A DNA stretch of 64,000 nucleotides from Macrostomum lignano. Its lineage: Eukaryota. The notes under the pieces are model-generated. The model was not told the DNA's origin. It made no database searches and was given only the letters and a program-made list of their open reading frames with translations. Positions 11,481 through 52,680 of the stretch are shown here, one piece after another (the stretch's first letter is position 1; each line of letters begins with the position of its first letter). Location of the stretch: positions 434,001 through 498,000 of the forward strand of contig NIVC01000713.1 of the NCBI GenBank assembly GCA_002269645.1, read 5' to 3'. Made by a program: the position numbers and the translations under genes.

Positions 11481-11994
11481 ATTGACAGCATAACGTTTGA
11501 GTTAATATGAACTAAGATGATGATACGAGAAGTTTTGAATTCAAGACGGCTTTCTAAATAAACCATATATGCATTACAGTATTGCACTTTGAAGATGCTG
11601 TGAGGGGAGTGATGACTGGAAGGGAAAGGTATTAGCTAAAAAGAATTCTGAACAATATTAAAGCTAAAAGCCTCAACCAGTGAAACAAATTGGTTCATCT
11701 TCATCTCCTTCATCTCACGCCTACTTGCAACTTTCAGAGCACTCCCAGGCATTCAACCAATTCCGTGTACCTCTTGCAGCAATTTGCATGTACATGTACA
11801 AATGCAATAGATGTTAAAAAAACGGAGGCACATCTCCCTTCAGCCTTACTTGAGTCAGTGATGGTGCGCTTGCATTCAACTGAGCATACGTGTACAGTAG
11901 AGCTGGACTCTGGCCAGAACTGGATGTAGTTCTTTTCTGCTAGGTGCTGCAGACTCTCCCATCCGCGCACGGTATATTCCATCTTTTAGTTGAG

Positions 11995-14900
11995 AATCAC
12001 TCCACACTGCCACAGACAATCACTCCTCACTGCCACAGACAATCACTCCTCACTGCCACAGACAATCACTCCACACTGCCACAGACACTGCCACAGACAG
12101 TCACTCCACACTGCCACAGACAATCACTCCTCACTGCCACAGACAGTCACTCCTCACTGCCACAGACAATCACTCCTCACTGCCACAGACAATCACTCCA
12201 CACTGCCACAGACACTGCCACAGACAGTCACTCCACACTGCCACAGACAATCACTCCTCACTGCCACAGACAGTCACTCCTCACTGCCACAGACAATCAC
12301 TCCTCACTGCCACAGACAGTTACTCATCACTGCCATAGACAATCACTCCTCATTGTCACAGTCACTCCTCACTGCCACAGACAGTTACTCATCACTGCCA
12401 TAGACAATCACTCCTCATTGTCACAGTCACTCCTCACTGCCACAGACAGTCACTCCTCACTGCCACAGACAGTCACTCCTCACTGCCACAGACAATCACT
12501 CCACACTGCCACAGACACTGCCACAGACAGTCACTCCACACTGCCACAGACAATCACTCCACACTGCCACAGACACTGCCACAGACAGTCACTCCACACT
12601 GCAACAGACAATCACTCCTCACTGCCACAGATAGTCACTCCTCACTGCCACAGACAATCACTCCTCACTGCCACAGACAGTCACTCCTCACTGCCACAGA
12701 CAATCACTCCTCACTGCCACAGACAGTCACTCCACACTGCCACAGACACTGCCACAGACAGTCACTCCACACTGCCACAGACAATCACTCCACACTGCCA
12801 CAGACACTGCCACAGACAGTCACTCCACACTGCCACAGACAATCACTCCTCACTGCCACAGACAGTCACTCCTCACTGCCACAGACAATCACTCCTCACT
12901 GCCACAGACAGTCACTCCTCACTGCCACAGACAATCACTCCTCACTGCCACAGACAGTTACTCATCACTGCCATAGACAATCACTCCTCATTGTCACAGT
13001 CACTCCTCACTGCCACAGACAGTCACTCCTCACTGCCACAGACAATCACTCCTCACTGCCACAGACACTGCCACAGACAGTCACTCCACACTGCCACAGA
13101 CAATCACTCCACACTGCCACAGACACTGCCACAGACAGTCACTCCACACTGCCACAGACAATCACTCCTCACTGCCACAGACAGTCACTCCTCACTGCCA
13201 CAGACAATCACTCCTCACTGCCACAGACAGTTACTCATCACTGCCATAGACAATCACTCCTCATTGTCACAGTCACTCCTCACTGCCACAGACAGTCACT
13301 CCTCACTGCCACAGACAGTCACTCCTCACTGCCACAGACAATCACTCCACACTGCCACAGACACTGCCACAGACAGTCACTCCACACTGCCACAGACAAT
13401 CACTCCTCACTGCCACAGACAGTCACTCCTCACTGCCACAGACAATCACTCCTCACTGCCACAGACAGTCACTCCTCACTGCCACAGACAATCACTCCTC
13501 ACTGCCACAGACAGTCACTCCACACTGCCACAGACACTGCCACAGACAGTCACTCCACACTGCCACAGACAATCACTCCACACTGCCACAGACACTGCCA
13601 CAGACAGTCACTCCACACTGCCACAGACAATCACTCCTCACTGCCACAGACAGTCACTCCTCACTGCCACAGACAATCACTCCTCACTGCCACAGACAGT
13701 CACTCCTCACTGCCACAGACAATCACTCCTCACTGCCACAGACAGTTACTCATCACTGCCATAGACAATCACTCCTCATTGTCACAGTCACTCCTCACTG
13801 CCACAGACAGTCACTCCTCACTGCCACAGACACTCACTCCTCACTGCCACAGACAGTCACTCCTCACTGCCACAGACAGTCACTCCTCACTGCCACAGAC
13901 AATCACTCCACACTGCCACAGACACTGCCACAGACAGTCACTCCACACTGCCACAGACAATCACTCCTCACTGCCACAGACAGTCACTCCTCACTGCCAC
14001 AGACAATCACTCCTCACTGCCACAGACAGTCACTCCTCACTGCCACAGACAATCACTCCTCACTGCCACAGACAGTTACTCATCACTGCCATAGACAATC
14101 ACTCCTCATTGTCACAGTCACTCCTCACTGCCACAGACAGTCACTCCTCACTGCCACAACAGTCACTCCTCACTGCCACAGACAATCACTCCACACTGCC
14201 ACAGACACTGCCACAGACAGTCACTCCACACTGCCACAGACAATCACTCCACACTGCCACAGACACTGCCACAGACAGTCACTCCACACTGCCACAGACA
14301 ATCACTCCTCACTGCCACAGACAGTCACTCCTCACTGCCACAGACAATCACTCCTCACTGCCACAGACAGTCACTCCTCACTGCCACAGACAATCACTCC
14401 TCACTGCCACAGACAGTTACTCATCACTGCCATAGACAATCACTCCTCATTGTCACAGTCACTCCTCACTGCCACAGACAGTCACTCCTCACTGCCACAA
14501 CAGTCACTCCTCACTGCCACAGACAGTCACTCCTCACTGCCACAGACAGTCACTCCTCACTGCCACAGACAGTCACTCCTCACTGCCACAGACAATCACT
14601 CCACACTGCCACAGACACTGCCACAGACAGTCACTCCACACTGCCACAGACAATCACTCCACACTGCCACAGACACTGCCACAGACAGTCACTCCACACT
14701 GCCACAGACAATCACTCCTCACTGCCACAGACAGTCACTCCTCACTGCCACAGACAATCACTCCTCACTGCCACAGACAGTTACTCATCACTGCCATAGA
14801 CAATCACTCCTCACTGCCACAGACAGTTACTCATCACTGCCATAGACAATCACTCCTCATTGTCACAGTCACTCCTCACTGCCACAGACAGTCACTCCTC

Positions 14901-15620
14901 ACTGCCACAGACAGTCACTCCTCACTGCCACAGACAATCACTCCACACTGCCACAGACACTGCCACAGACAGTCACTCCACACTGCCACAGACAATCACT
15001 CCACACTGCCACAGACACTGCCACAGACAGTCACTCCACACTGCCACAGACAATCACTCCTCACTGCCACAGATAGTCACTCCTCACTGCCACAGACAAT
15101 CACTCCTCACTGCCACAGACAGTCACTCCTCACTGCCACAGACAATCACTCCTCACTGCCACAGACAGTTACTCATCACTGCCATAGACAATCACTCCTC
15201 ATTGTCACAGTCACTCCTCACTGCCACAGACAGTCACTCCTCACTGCCACAGACAGTCACTCCTCACTGCCACAGACAGTCACTCCTCACTGCCACAGAC
15301 AATCACTTCACACTGCCACAGACACTGCCACAGACAGTCACTCCACACTGCCACAGACAATCACTCCACACTGCCACAGACACTGCCACAGACAGTCACT
15401 CCTCACTGCCACAGACAGTCACTCTTCATCGACACAGACAGTCACTCCACACTGCCACAGACAATCACTCCACACTGCCACAGACAATCACTCCTCACTG
15501 CCACAGACAATCACTCCACACTGCCACAGACACTGCCACAGACAATTACTCCACACTGCCACAGACAATCCTCCACACTACCACAGAGACAATATCACTC
15601 CACACTGCCACAGACAATGA
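11995..15620. repeat. 23-bp minisatellite (CCACAGACA[A/G]TCACTCC[T/A]CACTG) with 12-bp short units, ~3.6 kb
   Basis: Direct reading; the ORFs at 11944-15798 are repeat translations. Confidence 0.95.
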
Positions 15621-16105
15621 CTCGAAGTTATATTCCGAAAGTATAAACTCGAAATTCAGTTTTTGCTCTCCAATTCAATGCTTTGATGACAGCTGCGCCC
15701 AAGGTTTTGTTTATTTCAAAAAGTCGCTTTTCCATCCCATTTTGCTAAGGAATTCGGAGAAAGATGTTGACAACTATGAGAAAATAGAAATCAGCTGAAA
15801 TGCTACTGCAAACTACCAGATTGTTTTCGAGCATCAGGGGCTATCCATGCATTTTTTATGTTGTTCAGAAAGTAGCATGATAAAAAACCACGGCGTAGAA
15901 AAGGAGATTGATTTGTTGCAAAATCTAAGTTTATCGTTGGAAACAAAAAAGTGAGTATTTTACACTAACAAGCTAACAAACTGTAAAGAAGATTAAAATA
16001 TGATAAGCATTGTATTAAGTTTCGGTAAAGAATGTTTAAGTTTATAATGTTTTTTCATCCGTTGAAGCTCTTCAAACTCGTCAAGGTCGTCATTGTTTGC
16101 TCCTT

Positions 16106-19555: not shown

Positions 19556-20025
19556 AAGGACTACTTAAGGCATTCACTTCATGTCATTCTGCCACAAAAT
19601 CATGAAACACCAAACGTATTGTATTACTCAGTTTGCACTCAAGAAACTCATTCCAGCTCAATAAGTAGTTATAAACACCAGAAAAGTAATTTGAATGGTA
19701 AAAACTAATGTTTTTCTGTCAAATTACCCTCGATTATTCAATTATGTCATGTGGAGTCGCTATCATATGACAGAATCGCTATAAGCATGGTATCGTGAAA
19801 TTTGGCCTTCAAAAAATTATCCACGATTCCGGAATGTTACGTCCTGTTTAACGAAGTGACTTCAGTGGTCCTTGGTTTACCTATAAGACAGTTGCCTCAA
19901 AACCTCAAAACTTTTATAAATAATTTAAAGCAACGCGTATTTGCCTTAAATAATTGATTCAACATTTCAGCAGGTTTTTTCATTGTCGCCATCATAAGCG
20001 AAGTTTTCAATCGTCATTTAACAAT

Positions 20026-22155
20026 CTATTTAAGTATAATTCTCATCTGGTCGGCAAACTCCACAGACTCGTCGTAGACCTTGTTCTCCTTGGCGTAGTA
20101 CAGAATGGGAAAATCTCCTTTGGCTCGCTTGGCCCAACTGCACGGCTGGTCATCTCTCTCAATGACCCCCATCAGGCCGCTGTCACTGCTGCAGCCCTGG
20201 TGCCTGTTGTGTATGTAGAAACTGCGATGCAGTTCTGCCGTTCTGTTTCGGTAACCTTCGATGCTAAAGTCGACAAATGGGCCTCGTTTGTCAATTGTGA
20301 ATGGAGTCGAATCAATCAGACGCTCAATCGAGAACCAATTGGAAGTGTTGAGTTTGACTCTGTCTGTCACATCGAAGCTTGCGGACGCCATTACCGTCTG
20401 GCGGAGCAGCATTTGCACCACGATTCGCTGCGCGTCAAATTCTTTTAGATAGGTTTTGAAGAATCTGTCGTCTAAGATTGACGATCGATACACCAGGTAA
20501 TAATTGGGGTTCACGTTTCTGAATCCGTGATAGGTTTGCTTGCCAGTGAGAAACTCATCCAGGGCTGAGTGGCCCGAGCCTGCTCGAATCGAGAACAGCA
20601 CCTCTGAAAAACATATTTGGTTCGGAACCCAGGACTGATCTCAAAAACTTTTAATTCTCTCTGCTGCCATCTCTATTCATCTTTCTTGCCATCTCTAATC
20701 ACCTCTCCTGCCATCTCTAATCACCTCTCCTGCCATCTCTATTCACTTCTCCTGCCATCTCTATTCACATCTCCTGCCATCTCTATTCACCTCTCCTGAC
20801 ATCTCTATTCACATCTCCTGCCATCTCTAATCACCTCTCCTGCCATCTCTAATCACCTCTCCTGCCATCTCTAATCACCTCTCCTGCCATCTCTATTCAC
20901 TTCTCCTGCCATCTCTAATCACCTCTCCAGCCATCTCTATTCACCTCTCCTGCCATCTCTAATCACCTCTCCAGCCATCTCTAATCACCTCTCCTGCCAT
21001 CTCTATTCACCTCTCCAGCCATCTCTATTCACCTCTCCAGCCATCTCTAATCACCTCTCCTGCCATCTCTATTCACCTCTCCAGCCATCTCTATTCACCT
21101 CTCCTGCCATCTCTAATCACCTCTCCTGCCATCTCTAATCACCTCACCTGTCATCTCTATTCACATCTCCTGCCATCTCTATTCACCTCTTCTGCCATCT
21201 CTAATCACCTCACCTGTCATCTCTAATCACCTCTCCTGCCATCTCTAATCACCTCTCCTGCCATCTCTAATCACCTCACCTGTCATCTCTATTCACATCT
21301 CCTGCCATCTCTATTCACCTCTCCTGCCATCTCTAATCACCTCTCCTGCCATCTCTAATCACCTCTCCAGCCATCTCTATTCACCTCTCCAGCCATCTCT
21401 AATCACCTCTCCTGCCATCTCTAATCACCTCTCCTGCCATCTCTAATCACCTCTCCAGCCATCTCTATTCACCTCTTCTGCCATCTCTAATCACCTCTCC
21501 TGCCATCTCTAATCACCTCACCTGTCATCTCTATTCACATCTCCTGCCATCTCTATTCACCTCTTCTGCCATCTCTAATCACCTCTCCTGCCATCTCTAA
21601 TCACCTCTCCAGCCATCTCTATTCACCTCTTCTGCCATCTCTAATCACCTCTCCTGCCATCTCTAATCACCTCACCTGTCATCTCTATTCACCTCTTCTG
21701 CCATCTCTATTCACCTCTCCTGCCATCTCTATTCACCTCTCCTGCCATCTCTAATCACCTCTCCTGCCATCTCTAATCACCTCTCCAGCCATCTCTATTC
21801 ACCTCTCCAGCCATCTCTAATCACCTCTCCTGCCATCTCTAATCACCTCACCTGCCATCTCTATTCACCTCTCCTGCCATCTCTAATCACCCCTCCTGAC
21901 ATCTCCAATCACCCCTTCTGACATCTCCAATCACCTCTCCAGCCATCTTTATTCACATCTCCTGCCATCTCTAATCACCTCTCCTGTCATCTCTAATTAC
22001 TTCTCCAGCCATCTGCATTCAGCTCTCATGAAAGGTGAGCAAAGGCAAATAAATAAATAAAAGGAATTCCAACAAGGCTCACTTTCCGACCCAAACTCGT
22101 TGAATGCAAAGCAAGCTGAGAACAGAAAAAACAGCAGCAGCCAAGCGCTCGTCAT
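20026..22155 (-). CDS. Secreted protein of unknown family, paralog A, 216 aa; exons 22155-22083 and 20603-20026
   Basis: Signal-peptide-like exon MTSAWLLLFFLFSACFAFNEFGSE, donor gtgagc, acceptor ttttcag, phase 1; second exon open to its stop; homologous to the ORF at 22938-23505 (SNWF, F-IEG, RSFYIH..C..D.GL.GV.E..CSW, YYAK, ADQ). Confidence 0.8.
20660..22020. repeat. 22-bp minisatellite (CCATCTCTAATCACCTCTCCTG) filling the intron of paralog A
   Basis: Direct reading. Confidence 0.95.
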
Positions 22156-22550
22156 GCTTCTCTGGTTGAGCAAATTTGTAAAACTGAGTTCAAAGTTAGA
22201 ACTGTTTTGCTATTTGGTATTTCTGCTCTGGGTTGAAGTGAAATTTTCAATAGAAATAGTTGAAAATTGTTTCTATTTAAACAACATATCGAAAAATGTA
22301 AAAAATGTATGGATCGCATTTTTGATTGGTAAAATTGAGCTTGGGTAATTTTTTACGTTTTGTAAAAACGAATGTCTGTTGAAGAATAATATCGCTTAAA
22401 AAACTTTTGTAGCCCTTTATCTTTGAATTTAAATCTACTGCTGGATTTGGGTCATAGAGTTTTATGGCTATAAAAATATGAAAGGGTGAGGCAAGTAATG
22501 ACAAGATATTAACAGGATTAATAATCTTTGATTGTATCGAGAACAGAAAA
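22156..22550. promoter_or_regulatory. Short AT-rich intergenic spacer, probable bidirectional promoter
   Basis: 395 bp between divergent ATGs (22155 minus, 22551 plus); TATAAAA at 22469-22475 on the plus strand. Confidence 0.5.
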
Positions 22551-23505
22551 ATGAGTCTATTGATTGTACTTTTGTTGAGCTGCACCCATGGTGTAATGGC
22601 GAATTTTGGACAATTTTGGCCAGGTGAGTTAGTGGCAGTGTCAGTTAGTGACAGTGTCAGTTAGTGGCAGTGTCAGTTAGTGGCAGTGTCAGTTAGTGGC
22701 AGTGTCAGTTAGTGGCAGTGTCAGTTAGTGGCAGTGTCAGTTAGTGACAGTGTCAGTTAGTGGCAGTGTCAGTTAGTGCCAGTCAGTGCCAGTCAGTGCC
22801 AGTCAGTGCCAGTCAGTGCCAGTCAGTGCCAGTCAGTGCCAGTCAGTGCCAGTCAGTGCCAGTCAGTGCCAGTCAGTGCCAGTCAGTGCCAGTCAGTGCC
22901 AGTCAGTGCCAGTCAGTGCCAGTCGTTGCCTTTCCAGACCAGCCGAGATTCGTGCTGCTGTCGGTCAGGAAGAGCGCCAGCACCCAGTTGCCAGGCGAAC
23001 TGTATCTCCGCGGCCGAAGCACGGGCCACTGGGATCTGAGCTACAAAGACCTGCCAGGGGAATTCAGATCCCCCATGCTAGACAGAATCAATTCGTACGT
23101 GCAAAAGTTTCAAATTAGTAAATTTGTGGTCAAATGCGATCCGACGGCAGGCGTGTGGCTGCGGCGGAGTTTCGAGTGCCAGACAATTTGATCACCATAA
23201 GCAACTGGTTTGCGTCAGAATGGCTGCTGTCAACTTATCCGTTCGAGATGCGTGATATGAATATTTCAAATTTTGGAATCGAAGGCCTTAAGACAACAAG
23301 TCGTACTAGAAGTTTCTACATTCATGGTCCGCACGGCTTGTGCGTGAATGACTACGGCCTCTTGGGTGTCGCGGAGTCCCCGTTGGACAAGTGCAGTTGG
23401 GTGCGCCGCGGCTTTCCATCTCCAGTGTTTTATTACGCAAAATGGAACGGCACTTTCCAGAGTTCGGTTGGCTACGCTGACCAGCTTCTTGTTTACATGG
23501 AGTAG
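22551..23505 (+). CDS. Secreted protein of unknown family, paralog B (~213 aa if restored); exons 22551-22623 and 22938-23505; apparent 1-nt deletion at 23132-23134
   Basis: MSLLIVLLLSCTHGVMANFGQFWP, donor gtgagt, acceptor tttccag, phase 1. Alignment to paralog A continues only if gtc aaa tgc reads gtc aaa atg cga (FVVK-MRSDG). Could be a pseudogene or an assembly error. Confidence 0.7.
22627..22924. repeat. Compound array: 16-bp unit (AGTTAGTGGCAGTGTC) switching to a 10-bp unit (AGTCAGTGCC); occupies almost the whole intron of paralog B
   Basis: Direct reading. Confidence 0.9.
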
Positions 23506-23514
23506 CAAATATGA

Positions 23515-25150
23515 TCAACAACCGGTGCACCAACATCAGCTACTGATCAACAACCGGTGCACCAATATCAGCTACTGATCAACAACCGATGCACAAGCAT
23601 CAGCTACTGATCAACAACCGATGCACCAACATCAGCTACTGATCAACAACCGATGCACCAACATCAGCTACTGATCAACAACCGATGCACCAACATCAGC
23701 TACTGATCAACAACCGATGCACCAACATCAGCTACTGATCAACAACCGATGCATCAACATCAGCTACTGATCAACAACCGATGCACAAGCATCAGCTACT
23801 GATCAACAACCGATGCACCAACATCAGCTACTGATCAACAACCGATGCACCAACATCAGCTACTGATCAACAACCGATGCACAAGCATCAGCTACTGATC
23901 AACAACCGATGCACCAACATCAGCTACTGATCAACAACCGATGCACCAACATCAGCTACTGATCAACAACCGATGCACCAACATCAGCTACTGATCAACA
24001 ACCGATGCACCAACATCAGCTACTGATCAACAACCGATGCATCAACATCAGCTACTGATCAACAACCGGTGCACCAACATCAGCTACTGATCAACAACCG
24101 ATGCACCAACATCAGCTACTGATCAACAACCGGTGCACCAACATCAGGCACTGATCAACAACCGGTGCACCAACATCAGCTACTGATCAACAACCGATGC
24201 ACCAACATCAGCTACTGATCAACAACCGATGCACCAACATCAGCTACTGATCAACAACCGATGCACCAACATCAGCTACTGATCAACAACCGATGCATCA
24301 ACATCAGCTACTGATCAACAACCGGTGCACCAACATCAGCTACTGATCAACAACCGATGCACCAACATCAGCTACTGATCAACAACCGATGCACCAACAT
24401 CAGCTACTGATCAACAGCCGGTGCACCAACATCAGGCACTGATCAACAACCGGTGCACCAACATCAGCTACTGATCAACAACCGATGCACCAAAATCAGC
24501 TACTGATCAACAACCGATGCATCAACATCAGCTACTGATCAACAACCGGTGCACCAACATCAGCTACTGATCAACAACCGATGCATCAACATCAGCTACT
24601 GATCAACAACCGATGCACCAACATCAGCTACTGATCAACAACCGATGCATCAACATCAGCTACTGATCAACAACCGGTGCACCAACATCAGCTACTGATC
24701 AACAGCCGGTGCACCAACATCAGGCACTGATCAACAACCGGTGCACCAACATCAGCTACTGATCAACAACCGATGCATCAACATCAGCTACTGATCAACA
24801 ACCGGTGCACCAACATCAGCTACTGATCAACAACCGATGCATCAACATCAGCTACTGATCAACAACCGGTGCACCAACATCAGCTACTGATCAACAGCCG
24901 GTGCACCAACATCAGGCACTGATCAACAACCGGTGCACCAACATCAGGCACTGATCAACAACCGGTGCACCAAAATCAGCTACTGATCAACAACCGATGC
25001 ATCAACATCAGCTACTGATCAACAACCGGTGCACCAACATCAGCTACTGATCAACAACCGATGCACCAACATCAGCTACTGATCAACAACCGATGCACCA
25101 ACATCAGCTACTGATCAGCAACCAATGCGCAAGCATCAGCTACTGAACAA
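23515..25150. repeat. 32-bp minisatellite (ACTGATCAACAACCGATGCACCAACATCAGCT)
   Basis: Direct reading, period 32, contiguous units without spacers. Confidence 0.95.
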
Positions 25151-26240
25151 CCGATGCAAACACAACAACAATGTGCAAAACAAGCAATGTCTTCAGACCC
25201 CAACAGTTGCAAAGTATAATATCAGCAATTACTATTAGTTTCCGTAAACGTTTTCCCGAAAAATGTAATTAATTTTACTAACTTTGCACTGCAGTGTAAT
25301 GCTCACCCATAAATGCTTACAAATGCGTTTGTAGCAGCTGTGAACTTGGATTTCAATTAATCCAATCCAAATAATACGGGGCTCGTACGCGTACGAGTAA
25401 CGGTGAATAACTATTTACTTTTGAATAAAGGGGTATTATAGCAGCATAAAAATTTGGTGTTTGGTATATTTGGTATATTTGGTATATTTGGTAATAATTT
25501 AACTTGTAACTTTCAAAAATTATTTGAGTTCGTGTTTTATTGGCACATATAATTTCTTTTCGCGGTACTTGTTACAGCTAGTAGGCATGAATGAAATTTT
25601 TAATTTTAAATTAGTTTTCATGGAAAATTAGAGACATAAAATCCTAGTAGCGTGAGTTGAAAAATGAGCGTAGCTGTCTACATGCATCTGTCAGCGGTCT
25701 TATACGTGGTTGCTCCGTTCGAGTACTCCCATAATCCATAGCGAATTCCCATAGGCAACGATATAATTAGTCAAATTAACGCTAATCGACCAAAGCCGGC
25801 GAAAAAACGTGCATAAAAACGCTGCGTATGATATAGCTACAGTGATACGTCGCTCGAGTAAAAGGCGAGTACGTGCGTAAAAATAAGTGTACGCTCGTAC
25901 ACTTGAATGGCCTTTTAGCTGGCTACTGACTGCGCCTCGCCTCGCCGTTCCTATTTTCTGATTAACTAGCCGTGTTTTGTCTCCCATTCAGTCGCACAGC
26001 TTCTTCTCTCTGTTCGCTCTGTCTTCTGTCTCTCTACCCCCCACTCTGTCACCTCTCAGTCTCCAGGGTACTTGTTGACAACACAGCGCGGCGCGCTTAT
26101 GTAGAAAATATAGAAATGAGCTTTCAGCAGCCTGTAAAAATGAGCAGCAGTAGCTTCATTCATACTATCCAGAGAATTTGGACTTGGGCAAATAAACGCC
26201 TCTTCCGAGCCGAAACCCCTACACAGATTTCCATTCGCGA

Positions 26241-26809
26241 ATGGCTTACGAGGAGGCCAACGAGCAGCTGGCCCGCCAGCTCATCAAGCGAGGCTACGCG
26301 CTCTACCACCGCTGCCGGTCTGGCCCGATCCCCGTCTCGACTCCGTCGAGGCGTTCGTCGAACGATTGAAAAGTCGCGTGCTGAAGTTGGTGGACGTGTT
26401 TCACTACCGACTGCCGCTCGGCCTTCGACTCTGCCGGGTTGGCATCGACCCATTCGCTGGTGGGCGATTTTACATCGATCGGCCGGCCACTTGGTGCCAG
26501 GACAATCTGGCCGCCAGCTACAGGGCTCACCTTGCCGATAACTACGCCGTACTCATCGCTATCGGAGTCCTGTCCCGCAGCTACCTGCCCGGCGATCTGC
26601 TCTACCTGGCCGATGGCGACGTTGAATGGGCGGCTGTCGAAGTGCAGCGTCGCTTGGCTCGCGAGTGCCAACGGTGCCCCCGCTGCGGCCCGCTGGTCGA
26701 TTCTGTCTGGCACGGTGATCCCGCCGATGTTGGCCCGTTCGACGATCCACCGGCCAGGGCCTACCTGGTCTGTCTGGCGCTTAAACTGTCCAGGGATGGC
26801 GGCTGGTAG
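26241..26809 (+). CDS. Unknown protein (~189 aa if restored); apparent 1-nt deletion at 26317-26318; may have upstream exons
   Basis: A GC3-rich frame MAYEEANEQLARQLIKRGYALYHRCR continues as VWPDPRLDSVEAFVERLKSRVLKLVDVFHY..LSRDGGW* after a one-base shift; no family recognised. Confidence 0.45.
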
Positions 26810-26911
26810 AGTCCGGAACTCAGGTGCACTGCCAGCTGCTGCTTGGAGTCAGGAATTTTTATTACTGTATCTTCGACTAATGTAAATTTGTTGTGATAGT
26901 GACCACACCAC

Positions 26912-32100: not shown

Positions 32101-35100
32101 GAACGGCAGCACCGTACTCAGAGTACTTGCCCAGCTTTCGAGCTACTCGAACCAATCGAAGCAGTCGAGCAGTTTTGAGCAGTCCGATTAGAGTTACTGG
32201 CTGAAATTGTTTCATGTTCGGTTGAAGCTTACTGACCGTAGCTTACTGACCGTAGCTTACTGACCGTAGCTTACTGACCGTAGCTTACTGACCGTAGCTT
32301 ACTGACCATAGCTTACTGACCATAGCTTACTGACCGTAGCTTACTGACCGTAGCTTACTGACCGTAGCTTACTGACCGTAGCTTACTGACCGTAGCTTAC
32401 TGACCGTAGCTTACTGACCATAGCTTACTGACCATAGCTTACTGACCGTAGCTTACTGACCGTAGCTTACTGACCGTAGCTTACTGACCGTAGCTTACTG
32501 ACCGTAGCTTACTGACCGTAGCTTACTGACCGTAGCTTACTGACCGTAGCTTATTGACCGTAGCTTACTGACCGTAGCTTACTGACCGTAGCTTACTGAC
32601 CGTAGCTTACTGACCGTAGCTTACTGACCATAGCTTACTGACCGTAGCTTACTGACCATAGCTTACTGACCGTAGCTTACTGACCATAGCTTACTGACCA
32701 TAGCTTACTGACCGTAGCTTACTGACCGTAGCTTACTGACCGTAGCTTACTGACCGTAGCTTACTGACCGTAGCTTACTGACCGTAGCTTACTGACCGTA
32801 GCTTACTGACCATAGCTTACTGACCGTAGCTTACTGACCGTAGCTTACTGACCGTAGCTTACTGACCATAGCTTACTGACCATAGCTTACTGACCGTAGC
32901 TTACTGACCATAGCTTACTGACCGTAGCTTACTGACCATAGCTTACTGACCGTAACTTAGCCTACATAAATACATTACCTGTCTTAGTTATCCTAGCCAT
33001 CAATTTAATTATCAAATCGCATGAGTGATATGCAAAGCAATGGGAGAAGTTCTTTACAGATCGTTGGATCACAATGAGATGAGTCCAATTTGATGGACGT
33101 GTGAGCAAGCCCACCATAAATCTAAGCCTCATTTGATCCACAGCTACCAGCTAACTTTTAAGCTTGACTTGAAACCAAATAAAATCAGCCAGGGCAAAGA
33201 AAAGCTGAGTCACAAACCTCTTCTGTCTCGGCGCCCCAGAGCAGTAGGTCGAAAGGAATTGCCGATACGACGTCGATAAGAAACCAGCCTTTAAAATAGT
33301 GCACCGCAATCCGGCCCGGGTGCGTGACCACCTCATCATTTTTGTTAACGTACGTGGTGCGAAAATTGATTATTATATCAATGATAAACATGATGTCAAT
33401 GATGATGTCAATGCCTGTCACTGGGTCGATGTTCAGTTCGTACTGCTGCCTCTGTAAATGCCACGGTGGATTGTTTGGAAAGTAAATTTGCGAGTCATTT
33501 CTGTAATGTTGATGATGATGCTCACAATACATGTATTACCCATTGTACTTTAAAATTCATCTATAAAGCCCTAAAATGAGCAGAAACATACCATACATGT
33601 ACATGAATTAAATGGCACGGATAACATGTATAGCATCAACCAACATGACCTAAGCAACAACCAACATGATCTAAGCATCAACCAACATGATCTAAGCAAC
33701 AACCAACATGATCTAAGCAACAACCAACACGATCTAAGCCTCAACCAACACGATCTAAGCATCAACCAACATGATCTAAGCATCAACCAACACGATCTAA
33801 GCATCAACCAACACGATCTAAGCATCAACCAACATGATCTAAGCCTCAACCAACATGATCTAAGCAACAACCAACATGATCTAAGCCTCAACCAACACGA
33901 TCTAAGCAACAACCAACACGATCTAAGCAACAACCAACACGATCTAAGCATCAACCAACACAATCTAAGCATCAACCAACATGATCTAAGCATCAACCAA
34001 CATGATCTAAGCAACAACCAACACGATCTAAGCCTCAACCAACACGATCTAAGCATCAACCAACATGATCTAAGCCTCAACCAACATGATCTAAGCAACA
34101 ACCAACATGATCTAAGCCTCAACCAACACGATCTAAGCAACAACCAACACGATCTAAGCAACAACCAACACGATCTAAGCATCAACCAACACAATCTAAG
34201 CATCAACCAACATGATCTAAGCATCAACCAACATGATCTAAGCATCAACCAACACGATCTAAGCATCAACCAACACGATCTAAGCAACAACCAACACGAT
34301 CTAAGCAACAACCAACACAATCTAAGCATCACCCAACATGACCTAAGCAACAACCAACATGATCTAAGCATCAACCAACACGATCTAAGCAACAACCAAC
34401 ATGATCTAAGCAACAACCAACACGATCTAAGCCTCAACCAACACGATCTAAGCATCAACCAACATGATCTAAGCATCAACCAACACGATCTAAGCATCAA
34501 CCAACACGATCTAAGCATCAACCAACATGATCTAAGCCTCAACCAACATGATCTAAGCAACAACCAACATGATCTAAGCCTCAACCAACACGATCTAAGC
34601 AACAACCAACACGATCTAAGCAACAACCAACACGATCTAAGCATCAACCAACACAATCTAAGCATCAACCAACATGATCTAAGCATCAACCAACATGATC
34701 TAAGCAACAACCAACACGATCTAAGCCTCAACCAACACGATCTAAGCATCAACCAACATGATCTAAGCCTCAACCAACATGATCTAAGCAACAACCAACA
34801 TGATCTAAGCCTCAACCAACACGATCTAAGCAACAACCAACACGATCTAAGCAACAACCAACACGATCTAAGCATCAACCAACACAATCTAAGTATCAAC
34901 CAACACAACCTAAACATCAGCCAACACGATCTAAGCATCAACCAACATGATCTAAGCAACAACCAACATGATCTAACCCTCAACCAACACGATCTAAGCA
35001 ACAACCAACACGATCTAAGCAACAACCAACACGATCTAAGCATCAACCAACATGATCTAAGCCTCAACCAACATGATCTAAGCATCAACCAACACGATCT

Positions 35101-38100
35101 AAGCATCAACCAACACGATCTAAGCAACAACCAACACGATCTAAGCATCACCCAACATGATCTAAGCATCAACCAACACGATCTAAGCATCAACCAACAC
35201 GATCTAAGCAACAACCAACACGATCTAAGCATCAACCAACACGATCTAAGCAACAACCAACACGATCTAAGCATCAACCAACACGATCTAAGCAACAACC
35301 AACACGATCTAAGCATCACCCAACATGATCTAAGCATCAACCAACACGATCTAAGCATCAACCAACACGATCTAAGCAACAACCAACACGATCTAAGCAT
35401 CAACCAACACGATCTAAGCAACAACCAACACGATCTAAGCATCAACCAACACGATCTAAGCAACAACCAACATGATTTAAGCATCAACCAACACAATCTA
35501 AGCATCAACCAACACAATCTAAGCATCAACCAACACAATCTAAGCATCACCCAACATGATCTAGGCATCAACCAACACAATCTAAGCATCACCCAACATG
35601 ATCTAGGCATCAACCAACACAATCTAAGTATCAACCAACACAATCTAAGCATCAGCCAACATGATCTAAGCATCAACCAACACAATCTAAGCATCAACCA
35701 ACACAATCTAAGCATCACCCAACATGATCTAGGCATCAACCAACACAATCTAAGCATCACCCAACATGATCTAAGCATCAACCAACACGATCTAAGCATC
35801 AACCAACACGATCTAAGCATCAACCAACACGATCTAAGCATCAACCAACACGATCTAAGCATCAACCAACACGATCTAAGCATCAACCAACACGATCTAA
35901 GCATCAACCAACACGATCGAAGCACCAATAACACGATTTGAGCATCGACCATCACGATCTAAGCATCAACCAACACGATCGAAGCACCAATAACACGATC
36001 TAAGCACCAATAACACGATTTGAGCATCAACCAACACGATCTAAGCATCAACCAACACGATCGAAGCACCAATAACACGATCTAAGCACCAATAACACGA
36101 TCTAAGCATCAACCAACACGATCTAAGCATCAACCAACACGATCGAAGCACCAATAACACGATCTAAGCACCAATAACACGATTTGAGCATCAACCAACA
36201 CGATCTAAGCATCAACCAACACGATCGAAGCACCAATAACACGATCTAAGCCTCAACCAACACGATCTAAGCATCAACCAACATGATCTAAGCCTCAACC
36301 AACATGATCTAAGCAACAACCAACATGATCTAAGCCTCAACCAACACGATCTAAGCAACAACCAACACGATCTAAGCAACAACCAACACGATCTAAGCAT
36401 CAACCAACATGATCTAAGCAACAACCAACACGATCTAAGCCTCAACCAACACGATCTAAGCATCAACCAACATGATCTAAGCCTCAACCAACATGATCTA
36501 AGCAACAACCAACATGATCTAAGCCTCAACCAACACGATCTAAGCAACAACCAACACGATCTAAGCAACAACCAACACGATCTAAGCATCAACCAACACA
36601 ATCTAAGCATCAACCAACATGATCTAAGCATCAGCCAACACGATCTAAGCATCAACCAACACGATCTAAGCATCAACCAACACGATCTAAGTATCAACCA
36701 ACACAACCTAAACATCAGCCAACACGATCTAAGCATCAACCAACATGATCTAAGCAACAACCAACATGATCTAACCCTCAACCAACACGATCTAAGCAAC
36801 AACCAACACGATCTAAGCAACAACCAACACGATCTAAGCATCAACCAACATGATCTAAGCCTCAACCAACATGATCTAAGCATCAACCAACACGATCTAA
36901 GCATCAACCAACACGATCTAAGCAACAACCAACACGATCTAAGCATCACCCAACATGATCTAAGCATCAACCAACACGATCTAAGCATCAACCAACACGA
37001 TCTAAGCAACAACCAACACGATCTAAGCATCAACCAACACGATCTAAGCAACAACCAACACGATCTAAGCATCAACCAACACGATCTAAGCAACAACCAA
37101 CACGATCTAAGCATCACCCAACATGATCTAAGCATCAACCAACACGATCTAAGCATCAACCAACACGATCTAAGCAACAACCAACACGATCTAAGCATCA
37201 ACCAACACGATCTAAGCAACAACCAACACGATCTAAGCATCAACCAACACGATCTAAGCAACAACCAACATGATTTAAGCATCAACCAACACAATCTAAG
37301 CATCAACCAACACAATCTAAGCATCAACCAACACAATCTAAGCATCACCCAACATGATCTAGGCATCAACCAACACAATCTAAGCATCACCCAACATGAT
37401 CTAAGCATCAACCAACACGATCTAAGCATCAACCAACACGATCTAAGCATCAACCAACACGATCTAAGCATCAACCAACACGATCTAAGCATCAACCAAC
37501 ACGATCTAAGCATCAACCAACACGATCTAAGCATCAACCAACACGATCGAAGCACCAATAACACGATTTGAGCATCGACCATCACGATCTAAGCATCAAC
37601 CAACACGATCGAAGCACCAATAACACGATCTAAGCACCAATAACACGATTTGAGCATCAACCAACACGATCTAAGCATCAACCAACACGATCGAAGCACC
37701 AATAACACGATCTAAGCACCAATAACACGATCTAAGCATCAACCAACACGATCTAAGCATCAACCAACACGATCGAAGCACCAATAACACGATCTAAGCA
37801 CCAATAACACGATTTGAGCATCAACCAACACGATCTAAGCATCAACCAACACGATCGAAGCACCAATAACACGATCTAAGCACCAATAACACGATCTAAG
37901 CATCAACCAACACGATCTAAGCATCAACCAACACGATCTAAGCATCAACCAACACGATCTAAGCATCAACCAACATGATCTAAGCATCAATAAACATAAT
38001 CTAAGCATCAACCAACACGATCTAAGCATCAACCATCACGATCTAAGCATCAACCAACATGATCTAAGCATCAATAAACATAATCTAAGCATCAACCAAC

Positions 38101-41100
38101 ACGATCTAAGCATCAATCAACACGATCTAAGCATCAACCAACACGATCTAAGCTTCAACCAACATGATCTAAGCATCAATAAACATAATCTAAGCATCAA
38201 CCAACACGATCTAAGCATCAATCAACACGATCTAAGCATCAACCAACACTACGCTATCGATCTACGCCACATACATTGTACACCTAACACAATCAAGTCT
38301 TCGCAAATGAACCAAAGACCCAAATTTAATCCTCATGCTTGCATACCAATTTTCGCTTCTGATTATTGTCCAACAGAAATGCCGCCACGTAAGGCGTGGA
38401 AATTGAGGTGTAGATGACCAACACCAGGATGAACCAGTCCCACACCGACTTAAATGGCGAATAGTGCAGTATGATGCACCGATGCCCCTCCGGTGACTGC
38501 ATCTTGCTCTCCGGTGGCAGTTCGGTTCCAAATGTCAGCATCTACGAGTACAATACATCGAAAGATATCGATTCTGTATAGAATGGTAAATCAGCAGTCA
38601 CCGGTACCGGAAGCAGTTGTGGTAGAACCAACAACAGGAATGAGTTTGGTCAAAACTTTAAAAGGTCAAGCGACTTTACTTAGGTCAAATTAAGCTAAAC
38701 TGTTAGCTTAATAAATAGTGGAATTTCAAGGTAAGTATTTTATCCGAATATATAAAAGCTGAAAAATAAGGTTTTTTTTTTAGTAATAGGCTTAGTAATG
38801 GATAAACAGACAAAGGAAGTTTTACGATACAAAAGATACACCAAAGGAATTAAGATACACAATGTCACATGTAGTGTTTCATAAGTGACGAGAATTCTTT
38901 CATAACTTTTGAATAGGTTTTTGGCTCACTTTTGGATGGCTAGAGAGGTGTATGCCGAATGCCATTTGATACATATCCAGTCACAGAATATACGATTTCA
39001 GAGTTGGATGGACAAACCTGGCACCGATACGTCTCTTAATAAATATGAGCCGAATTCAAATGGTCAAACCTAGACTCAACTACAATTAACAATTTGTCCA
39101 TTATTTGCAAAATTTCTGTTGAAACTTTCCAGTTTTATCTATTCAAAAGTTATGACAGAATACTTGTTACTTTTGAAACACTCCTATTTGTTAATATAGT
39201 GGTTAGTTTTCATAAAAAACTCAAGCAGATCAGTTCTAAAAACGAATTTCTCGGTTAAAGGAACGAGAGAAAATAAACAAACAACAAATAAAACCAGACT
39301 GAACTTTCCGACATTAAGAGACTGTTATATGCTACTACCAAGTAGGCACCTACATCCAGCGTGTTATCATACTGAAATGGCGGTAGAATTTGGCGAAGTT
39401 TAGCATTTCGTCCAGATAGACTTTTACTAAATACTTTGAAACCTCAAACAGCTTTCCATCCTTGGCCTAATAATAAAGGAATATTCGTTAAAATATCCAC
39501 GTTTAACTCGTCATCTATCCTCAATCAAAATCCGGAAGCCCGTACTTTTGAGCTACCATATCAACCCTTAGCCAAATATTGCACCAAGCCTAAAACCTTC
39601 CAGTATTCACCCAACCATTCTTAAGTCATTTTTGTCAATTTTTTGCATCACCGAATCATTCACAAAGAACCGTTGCCAAGGGGGGGCTAGGGAGGGGCTC
39701 CAATATGCTCCACGAACTCCATGTCAGCTGAATAGGCGCCCATTTACAGCAGCTTCTGCGCCCCTGGTGCAGGCGCCCCTTGTGCTGGCGCCCCTTGTGC
39801 TGGCGCCCCTGGTGCTGGCGCCCCTGGTGCTGGCGCCCCTGGTGCTAAAGCCCCTTGTGCAGACGCCCCTGGTACTAAAGTCCCTGGTGCTAAAGCCCCT
39901 GGTGCTAAAGCCCCTGGTGCTAAAGCCCCTGGTGCTAAAGCCCCTGGTGCTAAAGTCCCTGGTGCTAAAGTCCCTGGTGCTAAAGCCCCTGGTGCTAAAG
40001 CCCCTGGTGCTAAAGTCCCTGGTGCTAAAGCCCCTGGTGCTAAAGTCCCTGGTGCTAAAGCCCCTGGTGCTAAAGCCCCTGGTGCTAAAGTCCCTGGTGC
40101 TAAAGCCCCTGGTGCTAAAGCCCCTGGTGCTAAAGTCCCTGGTGCTAAAGCCCCTGGTGCTAAAGCCCCTGGTGCTAAAGTCCCTGGTGCTAAAGCCCCT
40201 GGTGCTAAAGCCCCTGGTGCTAAAGTCCCTGGTGCTAAAGCCCCTGGTGCTAAAGCCCCTGGTGCTAAAGCCCCTGGTGCTAAAGCCCCTGGTGCTAAAG
40301 CCCCTGGTGCTAAAGCTCCCAAATAAAAAAAACTCTGGCTACGCCCATGCATTAACGGAAACCTTCACCCAAACTTCAGCCTAAGCGTGAAGTTCTCCCA
40401 AAACCATTTGCTTTTCAAACTAAGTATCAGCATCTTGCAGTTTCTCAAAACTCGATTCGAAGTCTTTCCTCACCTGGGCAACCTTCTCCGTCACATTCTG
40501 TCGCACCGAAGCCACCATAGGCGAGAAGCAGACGCTGTGCTGTCGACCCGCCTGCTCTCCAGCTTGCTGGTACTGGCCCGGCTGCAGCAGACTGGATCGC
40601 GGATGTCCGTAAATATCCCAGTCTTCTGGCACCCGATTGTCTAGGGAGTCCCTTCGACGATGTACTGAAAAAGAGTTTTTGATGATGAACTAAGCTAGTG
40701 CCATACTGAAAGAAATTAAGTAAAATATGTTCTGACTTATATTCCTACGACCAAGTTTGCATTCAACTTTGCCAAAAAGTGACTTCAAGTTTGAGAACAA
40801 CTGTTGCTCAGCTTCCAAGAAGGAGAAGAGGGACAAGAGACGGTTGGCGTTCGTGTTGCTTTTAGGATCGGAGGCGTGAGGACTGAGAGGTCTGAGGTCG
40901 TTCAGACGACCGGGTTCAGCTTTAAGATGCTCACACTGCACTGATTCAGCCACAGTTATCCATAGAGACCTGTTGCCGGGAGGGTCACGACTTTTCTATG
41001 GGCTTGCCAAAATTGAAGACACCTTCGCCAAAGTCGAGATTAAAATGGTATAGTTTAGCGCAAGACGAACGTTTGAGCAAGGACGCCACTCACACATCTC

Positions 41101-49834: not shown

Positions 49835-50869
49835 ATTCAGTCTAACGGGATTTTTTGCGTTTTTAACCTGAAATTATATATTTTTTCTGGTTCTTGCGTG
49901 CACTATCCGGGCGACTTAGCAGAGACGCGATAATTTAAATATACCTAAAACGTTCATTAGTTAGTAATTCGAACAAATTTCTATTTAATATGCAGAGAAA
50001 GTCTGGCATTATTATAGTACGTACAATTAAAACATGCCTGAAATATCAAAAGTTACATTATTTATATTAGCTTGTAAGTCTTTTTGCTAAATATTTTTGA
50101 TAAAAAACTTCGTGTAAATATTATTGACAATATCAGTATGATATATCCTTATTTCAAAAACACGAATAAAAGATTTGTTAAGCTTTGAAACATGATTAAT
50201 AGTATAAAATAATCACAATGATTACATTATTATTAAAAAATATAAAATAGAATATAAAAATGTATAAAACATTTGTTATATCCTATATACTAAAAATGAA
50301 ATGTCTGTAACTAACTAGCTATGCGATAGATTTCAGAAAAAGTGGCTCAACCGATTTTCTTCAAACTTGCACCATTTGATCAGAAATTTTCCTGGGACGG
50401 TACATGCATCTTGGCTAAGAAATTGCTCAATTTTAAAGGGATTAAATATTCGAAAAACATGCTTTTTTGCAAAGGTCAAGCAGCTCTTTCGACCTGAAAT
50501 GAATTGTAAAAATGCGAAAGAAAAAACTGACTGACTGAATTTCAATTGTGATAAAGATTGCATCACAACAAGATGAAAACAGTGTCGAAAAAATGCACAC
50601 AAGACTTGATTGTAATTGCGTAACCATATTGCTAACTTGAATTGAGACTGATACTGGCTGACTGAGAAATTGATTATGTCATAACTTTTTACTCTAACTG
50701 ACTTGCTATAAGAATTGAATTATAAGGGCCACAATACATGTTCTCCAATTGAAAAGAGATAGCCAAGATGCGAACAGACTGGACTGCTAATGTAGCGACC
50801 TGGGTTCGAATCTTAGTAGTGCAAAAACATTTTTTTATTAAAACACTTTAAAACACAAAATGCTAAACA

Positions 50870-52680
50870 TAAAAGAAGCGCAATGTCAAATATAAAAGAG
50901 CCACCATGCCAAACAAAAAAGTGCCACCATGTAGAACACAGAAGAGACACCATGTCAAACATAAAAGAGCCACCATTTCAAACATAAAAGAGCCACCATG
51001 TGAAACATATACGTGACTCAATGTCAAACATTAAAGAGCCACCATGTCAAACATTAAAGAGCCACCATGTCGAACATAACAGAGACAACATTTCAAACAT
51101 AAAAGAGCCATCATGTCAAACATAAAAGAGCCACCATGTCGAACATTAAAGAGCCACTATGTCAAACATAACAGAGACAACATTTCAAACATAAAAGAGC
51201 CATCATGTCAAACATTAAAGAGCCACCATGTCGAACATTAAAGAGCCACCATTTTGAACATTGAAGAGCCACCATGTCAAACATTAAAGAGCCACCAAGT
51301 AAAATATAAAAGAGCTACCATGTCAAAAATAAAAGAGCCACCATGTCGAACATAACAGAGACAACATTTCAAACATTTAAGAGCCACCATGTCAAACATA
51401 AAAGAGCGACCATGTCGAGCATAAAAGAGCCACCATGTCAAACATAAAAGAGCCACCATGTCAAACATTAAAGAGCCACCATGTCAAACATTCAAGAGAA
51501 ACCATGTCGAACATAACAGAGACAACATTTCAAACATTTAAGAGCCACCATGTCAAACATAAAAGAGCCACCATGTCGAGCATAAAATAGCCACCATGTT
51601 GAACATTAAAGAGCCACCATGTCAAACATTAAAGAGCCACCATGTCGAGCATAAAAGAGCCACCATGTCGAACATAAAAGAGCCACCATGTCAAACATTA
51701 AAGAGCCACCATGTCAAACATTCAAGAGACACCATGTCGAACATAACAGAGACAACATTTCAAACATTTAAGAGCCACCATGTCAAACATAAAAGATCTA
51801 CCATGTCAAACATAAAAGAGCCATCATGTCAAACATAAAAGAGCCACCATGTCGAACATTAAAGAGCCACCATGTTCAACATTAAGGAGCCACCATATCA
51901 AACATAAAAGAGCCACCATGTCAAACATTAAAGAGCCACCATGTCAAACATTAAAGAGCCACCATGTCAAACATTCAAGATCAGCCATGTCGAACATAAA
52001 AGAGCCACCATGTAAAATATAAAAGAGCTACCATGTCAAACATAAAAGAGCCATCATGTCAAACATAAAAGAGCCATCATGTGAAACATATACGTGACTC
52101 AATGTCAAACATTAAAGAGCCACCATGTCAAACATATACGTGACTCCATGTCAAACATTAAAGAGCCACCATGTCAAACATATATGACTCCATGTCAAAC
52201 ATATATGACTCCATGTCAAACATATATGACTCCATGTCAAACATTAAAAATAAAAAAGACACCATGTCACACATAAGGGAGCCACCATATCAAACATAAA
52301 AGAGCTACCATGTCAAAACATTATTGAGCCATTATGCCCAATATAAAAAGACACAATTTCAAATGTAAAAGGGCCGCCATGTCAAACATAGAAGAGCCAC
52401 CATGTCAAACATAGAAGAGCCACCATGTCAAACAACTAAGCCACCATGTCAAACATAACAGAGACACCATTTCAAACGTAAAAGGGCCGCCATGGCAAAC
52501 ATAGAAGAGCCACCATGTCAAACATTAAAGAGCTACCATGTCAAACACAAAAGGGCCACCACGTCCAACATTAAAGAGCTATCATGTCAAACACAAAAGA
52601 GCTACCATGTCAAACATTAAAAAGCCACTTTTTTAAACAAAAAAGAGACACCATTTCAAACATAAAAGAAGTGTCATGCC
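50870..52680. repeat. Diverged 23-bp minisatellite (CCACCATGTCAAACATAAAAGAG)
   Basis: Direct reading. Confidence 0.92.

Follow-up and report, generated by a model that had tools for sequence, protein, structure and literature searches.

What kind of protein do two divergently transcribed genes of Macrostomum lignano encode, and does their head-to-head arrangement say anything about how they work? The genes lie at positions 20,026 to 23,505 of a 64,000-nucleotide (nt) stretch of contig NIVC01000713.1 (assembly GCA_002269645.1, positions 434,001 to 498,000), which was analysed as a whole and is called the window here. An earlier note, made from the letters of this DNA, had described them as paralogous secreted proteins of an unnamed family, products of an old inverted duplication that stayed under one promoter. 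We refer to the minus-strand gene as gene A and to the plus-strand gene as gene B. Our analysis bears out the family, which turns out to be widespread, and casts doubt on the history and the shared promoter; it also uncovers a frameshift in gene B as assembled.

The pair belongs to an unnamed extracellular domain family

Gene A and gene B are very likely secreted single-domain members of a real, widespread and unnamed domain family. The two proteins align over their full length at 32% identity (BLASTP E=7e-30), far beyond chance, and both begin with a hydrophobic segment. The description of two head-to-head paralogs that each start with a signal peptide is supported. All the motifs reported as shared (RS..LD, SNWF, F.IEG, RSFYIH..H..C..D.GL.GV.E....CSW, YYAK and ADQ) are common to both, as are two conserved cysteines, exactly two in each mature protein. 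Together the two sequences seed a family profile, with which an exhaustive HMMER search, run over 1.84 billion cluster representatives, returned 231 proteins at E<=1e-3, 30 of them at E<=1e-10. Flatworm members and bacterial units align over their full length. A word-indexed homolog search is nearly blind to the family, returning between two and six matches, all of them Macrostomum proteins.

The family, defined by an alignment of 49 sequences, extends to five animal phyla (cnidarians, echinoderms, amphioxus, molluscs and flatworms) and to Myxococcota, with named members in M. lignano, Branchiostoma, echinoderms (Amphiura, Patiria, Anneissia), a gastropod (Batillaria) and cnidarians (Acropora, Actinia); all of these are 'uncharacterized' or named for an adjoining domain. 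The adjoining domains include Lectin_C, TSP_1, EGF/cEGF, fn3, PAN_1, Sushi, Kringle, ZP, F5/8 type C, SUEL lectin, ILEI and the adhesion-GPCR modules 7tm_2+GPS. All of these partners are extracellular, and A and B carry N-terminal hydrophobic signal sequences. The earlier note had likened the domain to one of molluscs and other invertebrates that is often fused to lectin or PAN domains, and this was correct: Batillaria is among the members, and Lectin_C and PAN_1 are among the partners.

Across the 49 sequences, numbered by the translation of gene A exon 2, four residues are invariant (F76, W89, C137 and C154) and nine are near-invariant (F90, F112, G116, R126, F128, D140, G142, P165 and A183). 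The tryptophan stands in NWF, the arginine in R-x-F-x-I, the aspartate and glycine in GGC-x2-D-x-G and the alanine in an Ala-Asp (AD) pair. Gene A and gene B keep every one of these core residues.

Searches found no existing family that accounts for the domain. Pfam gave no match at E<=1 for gene A, for gene B fragments or for the 49 isolated domains, and a Pfam scan of 66 full-length relatives found no consistent family at the position of the domain. Searches of PDB sequences with a 4-sequence profile, the 49-sequence profile and gene B returned nothing relevant. Structure prediction depended on the depth of the alignment: with four sequences the model was unusable (predicted local distance difference test score, pLDDT, 44.7), whereas AlphaFold2 with the 49-sequence alignment gave a compact single domain at pLDDT 91.9 and a predicted template modelling (TM) score of 0.89. 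Foldseek searches of PDB and BFVD with this model, a check that the earlier note had asked for, found no match at E<=0.001; the best PDB match had E=0.1 and a TM score of ~0.2. The absence of Pfam, PDB-sequence and Foldseek matches upholds the term 'unnamed family'. We found no literature on the domain, and the accessions of its relatives in other species are absent from the literature.

Automatic UniProt names attached to members (FBA, Fibrinogen C-terminal, Jacalin-type lectin, TSPc and CBM_X) were not reproduced by Pfam scans. The likeness of gene B to the FBA/Fbs1 sugar-binding domain consists of such a name ('FBA domain-containing protein', A0A1I8JSG4); gene B has no Pfam FBA match at E<=1, no PDB sequence match at E<=10 and no Foldseek match, and the label appears spurious.

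A fibrinogen- and collagen-propeptide-like prefix in bacterial and coral members

Could the domain nevertheless be a distant version of a known one? A hint comes from bacteria. A Myxococcota protein (P0100) holds three copies of the domain, and a scan of bacterial genomes added ten more loci, mostly in metagenome-assembled genomes of Myxococcota/Polyangiales with some in Gamma- and Alphaproteobacteria, one of them on a 1.08-Mb contig. At nine of the ten loci the domain forms the extreme C-terminus of a large cysteine-rich repeat surface protein and is preceded by the motif 'C..G.Y.IDP....V.CDM.T.GGGWTMVYK'; the tenth, from Rhodobacteraceae, has a signal peptide, the domain and a PEP-CTERM motif. 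Besides the bacterial loci, this prefix occurs in three of the 152 listed relatives (Acropora P0065 and P0088, and the bacterial P0100). Gene A and gene B lack it, and their mature proteins begin directly at the ~185-amino-acid (aa) body; like most animal members, they have the body alone. The presence of one domain in both animals and bacteria may reflect ancient sharing or horizontal transfer.

The bacterial and Acropora prefix scores above the Pfam Fibrinogen_C cut-off (26-34 bits), and it also matches the fibrillar-collagen C-propeptide domain (COLFI), at positions 20-101 (Acropora) or 32-70 (bacterial) of 233. In PDB it matches FIBCD1, angiopoietins, fibrinogen, intelectin/XEEL and procollagen C-propeptides, in each case confined to the initial 50-60 residues, although in Acropora the FIBCD1 alignment continues into the domain itself, across its first strand and helix. 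Aligned with fibrinogen gamma by hhalign, units of prefix plus body reach 94.7% probability, against a template that is a single unverified sequence. UniProt, moreover, automatically names one Macrostomum paralog 'Fibrinogen C-terminal domain-containing'. One could thus read the domain as a very divergent fibrinogen-related domain (FReD), or a relative of COLFI or intelectin, and A and B as ordinary FReD-type lectins that lack the A subdomain. We regard this as unlikely. The Fibrinogen_C match covers profile positions 4-53 (up to 64 in Acropora) of 221 only; the body alone, against fibrinogen gamma without the prefix region, falls to 0.1-0.3% in hhalign, a comparison made weak by the same unverified single-sequence template; no FReD, intelectin or COLFI chain is among the top 50 Foldseek matches of the pLDDT-92 model, though PDB holds many; and gene A and gene B have no Pfam match at E<=1. 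As it stands, the evidence places neither gene in FReD (PF00147), COLFI (PF01410) or FBA.

The likenesses and differences can be set out domain by domain. FReD and intelectin/X-type lectins resemble the family in being extracellular, ~200-230 aa long and kept with modules of lectin and innate-immunity type, and the 'A' subdomain and first strand with which they begin (C..G.Y.I.P...V.CDM.T.GGGWTvi..) also open the bacterial members and some of those from corals. Intelectins offer a parallel, since there too a different body comes after the shared 'A' start. Neither the FReD B and P subdomains nor intelectin resembles the 185-aa body in Pfam, PDB-sequence, hhalign or Foldseek comparisons; unlike FReD, the body has one disulfide, of a spacing peculiar to it (C-x16-C), and no P-domain motif. 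The COLFI likeness is seen in the prefix of Acropora P0178 ('G.R.NPA..C.D......G.YWI......V.C.M.TG'), which scores 28.3 bits over positions 20-101 of that model, slightly more than the gathering cut-off requires, and also matches PDB chains 5K31 and 4AE2. This match stops ~30 residues into the domain, however, and the body is unmatched by sequence or Foldseek.

Gene structures and a frameshift in gene B as assembled

Each gene was reconstructed with a signal-peptide exon, a phase-1 intron and a domain exon. The features are as follows.

22155..22083, minus strand: gene A exon 1, 73 nt, donor ...GGAAA followed by GTGAGC; encodes MTSAWLLLFFLFSACFAFNEFGSE
22083..22155, minus strand: gene A putative signal peptide (exon 1), MTSAWLLLFFLFSACFA followed by FNEFGSE; mean Kyte-Doolittle value of the hydrophobic core 2.1
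22082..20604, minus strand: gene A intron, phase 1, GT..AG
20603..20026, minus strand: gene A exon 2, complete ~190-aa domain; stop TAG at 20028-20026
22551..22623, plus strand: gene B exon 1, 73 nt, donor ...GGCCAG followed by GTGAGT; encodes MSLLIVLLLSCTHGVMANFGQFWP
22551..22623, plus strand: gene B putative signal peptide (exon 1), MSLLIVLLLSCTHGVMA followed by NFGQFW
22624..22937, plus strand: gene B intron, phase 1, GT..AG; 16-nt and 10-nt tandem repeats fill 22627-22924
22938..23505, plus strand: gene B exon 2, domain and stop TAG at 23503-23505; frame interrupted
23134..23505, plus strand: 123-aa open reading frame (MRSDGRRVAAAEF...), the sole gene B product annotated by GenBank on this contig

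The precursor of gene A, from open reading frame and splice reconstruction, is 216 aa long, has its two cysteines at C162 and C179 and is identical to GenBank PAA77999.1 (BOX15_Mlig005059g3). Nearly the whole of its intron is a 22-nt minisatellite of ~62 copies (20659-22014). The start codon of gene B is at 22551, a small correction to the earlier note, and its cysteines are C160 and C177. The 73-nt signal-peptide exons, the phase-1 introns and the 395-bp gap between the genes were all recovered as that note had given them. Its description of one domain exon per gene holds for gene A; in gene B, exon 2 is frameshifted in the window, which it had missed.

The lesion becomes plain against two further copies of the locus in the same assembly, g2 on NIVC01000070.1 (PAA91863, PAA91864) and g1 on NIVC01001301.1 (PAA69674, PAA69673); the copy in the window is g3. 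Both have the same head-to-head layout, an identical 395-bp spacer and an intact gene B of 213 aa, which GenBank models as 225-aa 5'-partial proteins. Compared with them, gene B exon 2 in the window lacks one G between 23142 and 23143 (GTGGTC-AAATG versus GTGGTCGAAATG). The reading frame of the assembled sequence consequently meets a stop, TGA, at 23189-23191, and the last 123 aa, which are conserved, fall in another frame; the GenBank remnant of 123 aa (P0176) is accordingly what the frameshift leaves of gene B.

Is gene B dead in this copy, or is the assembly wrong? We consider an assembly indel, that is an uncorrected single-base error in the PacBio/Canu/Pilon assembly, the probable cause. 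The single-base gap is the only difference over the 568 nt of exon 2, with no substitution relative to either intact copy, and this absence of substitutions is why the frameshift is read as an error. Between the window and g2, the sequence from ~22015 to 26910 is identical except for the gene B gap and a 1-nt deletion at 26308, so that a second deletion that breaks an open reading frame, in a C-run 3 kb away, sits in the same block without substitutions; the flanks of the block differ by 2-3%. Such a pattern is typical of consensus errors that long reads leave behind in repeats that are nearly identical, because polishing with short reads is unreliable there. The alternative, a genuine and very recent pseudogene or null allele in g3, with one of three redundant copies decaying in a neopolyploid genome, is possible but improbable in our judgement. 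In its favour, the missing G is not within a homopolymer (GTCGAAA -> GTCAAA); Mlig_3_7 was assembled from PacBio reads by Canu and polished by Pilon with Illumina and RNA sequencing (RNA-seq) reads (PMC5730564); GenBank annotates the 123-aa remnant alone; and the locus is redundant in M. lignano (g1-g3). A dead gene B had been named as grounds for abandoning the original interpretation, and formally gene B is dead in the window, though probably through assembly error.

A GT..AG-bounded piece of 56 nt (23095-23150) spans the frameshift site, and its removal restores the gene B frame. We rejected it as a mini-intron: its excision would cost 19 residues, a conserved core strand among them, and no such intron is needed in the intact copies. 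The UniProt model that skips it (A0A1I8IVM5, P0004, 'FBA_1 domain-containing'), which we take for a gene-prediction artefact, is a chimera, an antisense translation of gene A exon 2 (19954-20448, plus strand) fused to gene B; the skipped GT..AG-flanked piece measures 57 nt in the intact copies and 56 nt in the window.

The block of ~5 kb without substitutions (22015-26910) comprises gene A exon 1, the spacer, gene B and the next gene (comparison records L001 and L005), and its flanks diverge by 2-5% between copies. It may stem from gene conversion between homeologous copies, from a haplotype that they share or from collapse during assembly. Over gene A, the codons of g3 and g2 differ at seven synonymous and four non-synonymous sites, small counts that are consistent with purifying selection.

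The head-to-head arrangement

Does the pairing itself carry meaning? The start codons of gene A and gene B are separated by exactly 395 bp (22156-22550) and diverge in all three genomic copies; with starts less than 1 kb apart, the genes have the geometry of a bidirectional-promoter pair. The spacer contains the following elements.

22156..22550, no strand: spacer, 395 bp, AT-rich (30% GC), identical in three genomic copies
22469-22475, plus strand: TATAAAA, 82 nt upstream of the gene B ATG; consensus match only
22281-22274, minus strand: TTTAAATA, 126 nt upstream of the gene A ATG; TATA-like, consensus match only

The earlier note saw A and B as co-regulated partners under one promoter, possibly a heterodimer; in its full form this model has a bidirectional promoter common to both genes and makes the partnership obligate. 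The divergent layout and the spacer, base for base the same in three copies, speak for this, as does the retention of every family-conserved residue in both proteins. Yet the identical block runs ~5 kb beyond the spacer, so the identity of the spacer over three copies is not specific to a promoter. The two TATA-like elements, one for each gene and ~190 bp apart, suggest that the spacer holds two core promoters and not a single shared one, which counts against the idea of a pair kept under one promoter; shared regulation is possible, given that the layout is kept in all three copies.

The relatives of the pair within M. lignano argue in the same direction. Mlig024555 (with Mlig019716) and Mlig032070, GenBank 'hypothetical proteins' of 222-228 aa, resemble A and B in having two exons, with a signal-peptide exon (64 or 70 nt in Mlig024555 and Mlig032070, against 73 nt in the pair), a phase-1 intron and one domain exon. 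The conserved pair of cysteines is present too, and their identity to A and B is 33-47%. In contrast to A and B they are solitary and dispersed, with no divergent partner gene within 10 kb, so that the domain needs no paired partner. Since solitary paralogs have the same layout, the exon structure is a family trait, which weakens the argument from identical architecture to an old inverted duplication. In a neighbour-joining tree, computed without bootstrap support, the four single-domain Macrostomum proteins form one clade in which gene B branches first and gene A is nearest to Mlig024555, and gene A is 47% identical to Mlig024555, above its 33% identity to gene B. From the tree and the identities, A and B are not sister copies of a recent inverted duplication; if the pair did arise by duplication, that event would be older than the dispersal of the closer relatives of gene A. 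Taken together, these points make the model of co-regulated, obligate partners improbable. No further family members were found in the 64-kb window besides gene A and gene B, and the head-to-head arrangement itself adds little to the interest of the finding.

What the proteins may do

The explanation that we favour, somewhat more than not as a whole and with no specific ligand class attached, runs as follows. Each gene would encode a signal peptide that is cleaved off and, behind it, one copy of the unnamed ~185-aa extracellular domain, predicted to be a compact alpha/beta, strand-rich module with one conserved disulfide. The domain would be an old mobile extracellular module, used in mosaic matrix and cell-surface proteins of cnidarians, echinoderms, amphioxus and molluscs, and a prefix of the FReD/intelectin/fibrillar-collagen C-propeptide type would have been lost in A and B. 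In Macrostomum the domain appears to have multiplied, both as secreted proteins of one domain (A, B, Mlig024555 and Mlig032070) and as tandem arrays, of which M. lignano has examples with two to four domains. A and B would enter the endoplasmic reticulum, fold with one disulfide and perhaps be N-glycosylated; the mature proteins are ~23 kDa each, with a predicted isoelectric point of ~8-9 and two N-glycosylation sequons apiece. They would then be secreted as soluble binding proteins for an extracellular ligand, plausibly a glycan or a matrix component. That they are lectin-like ligand binders is a tentative part of this proposal.

Several points weigh against it. The signal peptides were assigned from hydropathy and by eye alone, and secretion and the binding of a ligand or glycan are both predictions. 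The lectin-like part is drawn from the neighbours of the domain and from an N-terminal prefix that neither A nor B has. Galectins were the top Foldseek matches, and at TM ~0.2 and E>=0.1 we rejected them as noise. The gene B deletion falls outside a homopolymer in an Illumina-polished assembly, and g3 may therefore carry a real null allele. Both genes are taken to be transcribed, because the Mlig_3_7 gene models are derived from RNA-seq (PMC5730564); no expression record appears under their gene identifiers in PMC5816591, PMC12896417, PMC5946080, PMC10786194, PMC6410801 or PMC5977470 or their supplements, and peptide and DNA strings of A and B have no match in PMC6410801.

A different role altogether is that of a structural part of a secretion (mucus, rhabdites, adhesive, eggshell or seminal fluid), in which A and B would not be specific binders. 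Macrostomum has rich glandular secretions, and small, basic, secreted proteins from a lineage-expanded family with tandem-array members of two to four domains would suit such a role. The composition of A and B, however, is neither low-complexity nor repetitive, and they are absent, by identifier and peptide string, from the supplements on adhesion (PMC6410801) and seminal fluid (PMC5977470), a weak point because those supplements use other identifier systems. We hold this role to be rather unlikely, and keep soluble binding as the preferred account. A bolder extension of it would make the ~185-aa body an undescribed fold or superfamily, a fourth 'body' placed after the A subdomain known from FReD, intelectin and the collagen C-propeptide, common to Metazoa and Myxococcota and devoted to ligand or glycan recognition, with A and B co-expressed from their spacer and acting together; as a complete package this is unlikely.

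Other features of the window

The 1-nt deletion at 26308 (CCACCC -> CCACC) disrupts a gene at ~26144-26809 on the plus strand, downstream of gene B. A 189-aa open reading frame of this gene ('MAYEEANEQLARQLIKRGY...') is intact on the g2 contig (L001 14153-14722); GenBank gives a different 221-aa product on the contig of the window, and no Pfam match is on record. From ~30350 to beyond 32155, on the minus strand, lies a gene with PAS, Ion_trans and cNMP-binding domains, the architecture of an EAG/KCNH-type channel (L016 1-1806; L001 16398-21002), which is unrelated to the pair.

The window is rich in long minisatellites, with 35 Tandem Repeats Finder rows at score >=300, units of 10-46 nt and up to ~220 copies. 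They lie in introns and intergenic DNA (for example 11997-15623, 33632-38249, 23512-25158 and 50865-52669) and produce spurious long open reading frames such as 33571-35955 and 11944-13764.

Implications for the family and for Macrostomum

GenBank already lists the two genes, as 'hypothetical proteins', and what is new is the definition of the domain. Gene B shows in practice that single-base indels in Mlig_3_7 truncate gene models. The domain is present in at least 231 cluster representatives from five animal phyla and Myxococcota, and because it is so widespread, has no Pfam model or solved relative and yet is confidently predicted, it merits a family entry and an experimental structure. The link of its prefix to FReD, intelectin and collagen-propeptide domains points to a modular history in which one 'A' subdomain was combined with alternative bodies, a history relevant to research on the evolution of innate-immune lectins and of the extracellular matrix. 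With transgenesis and RNA interference available in M. lignano, the small single-domain proteins A and B offer a tractable entry to the function of the domain.

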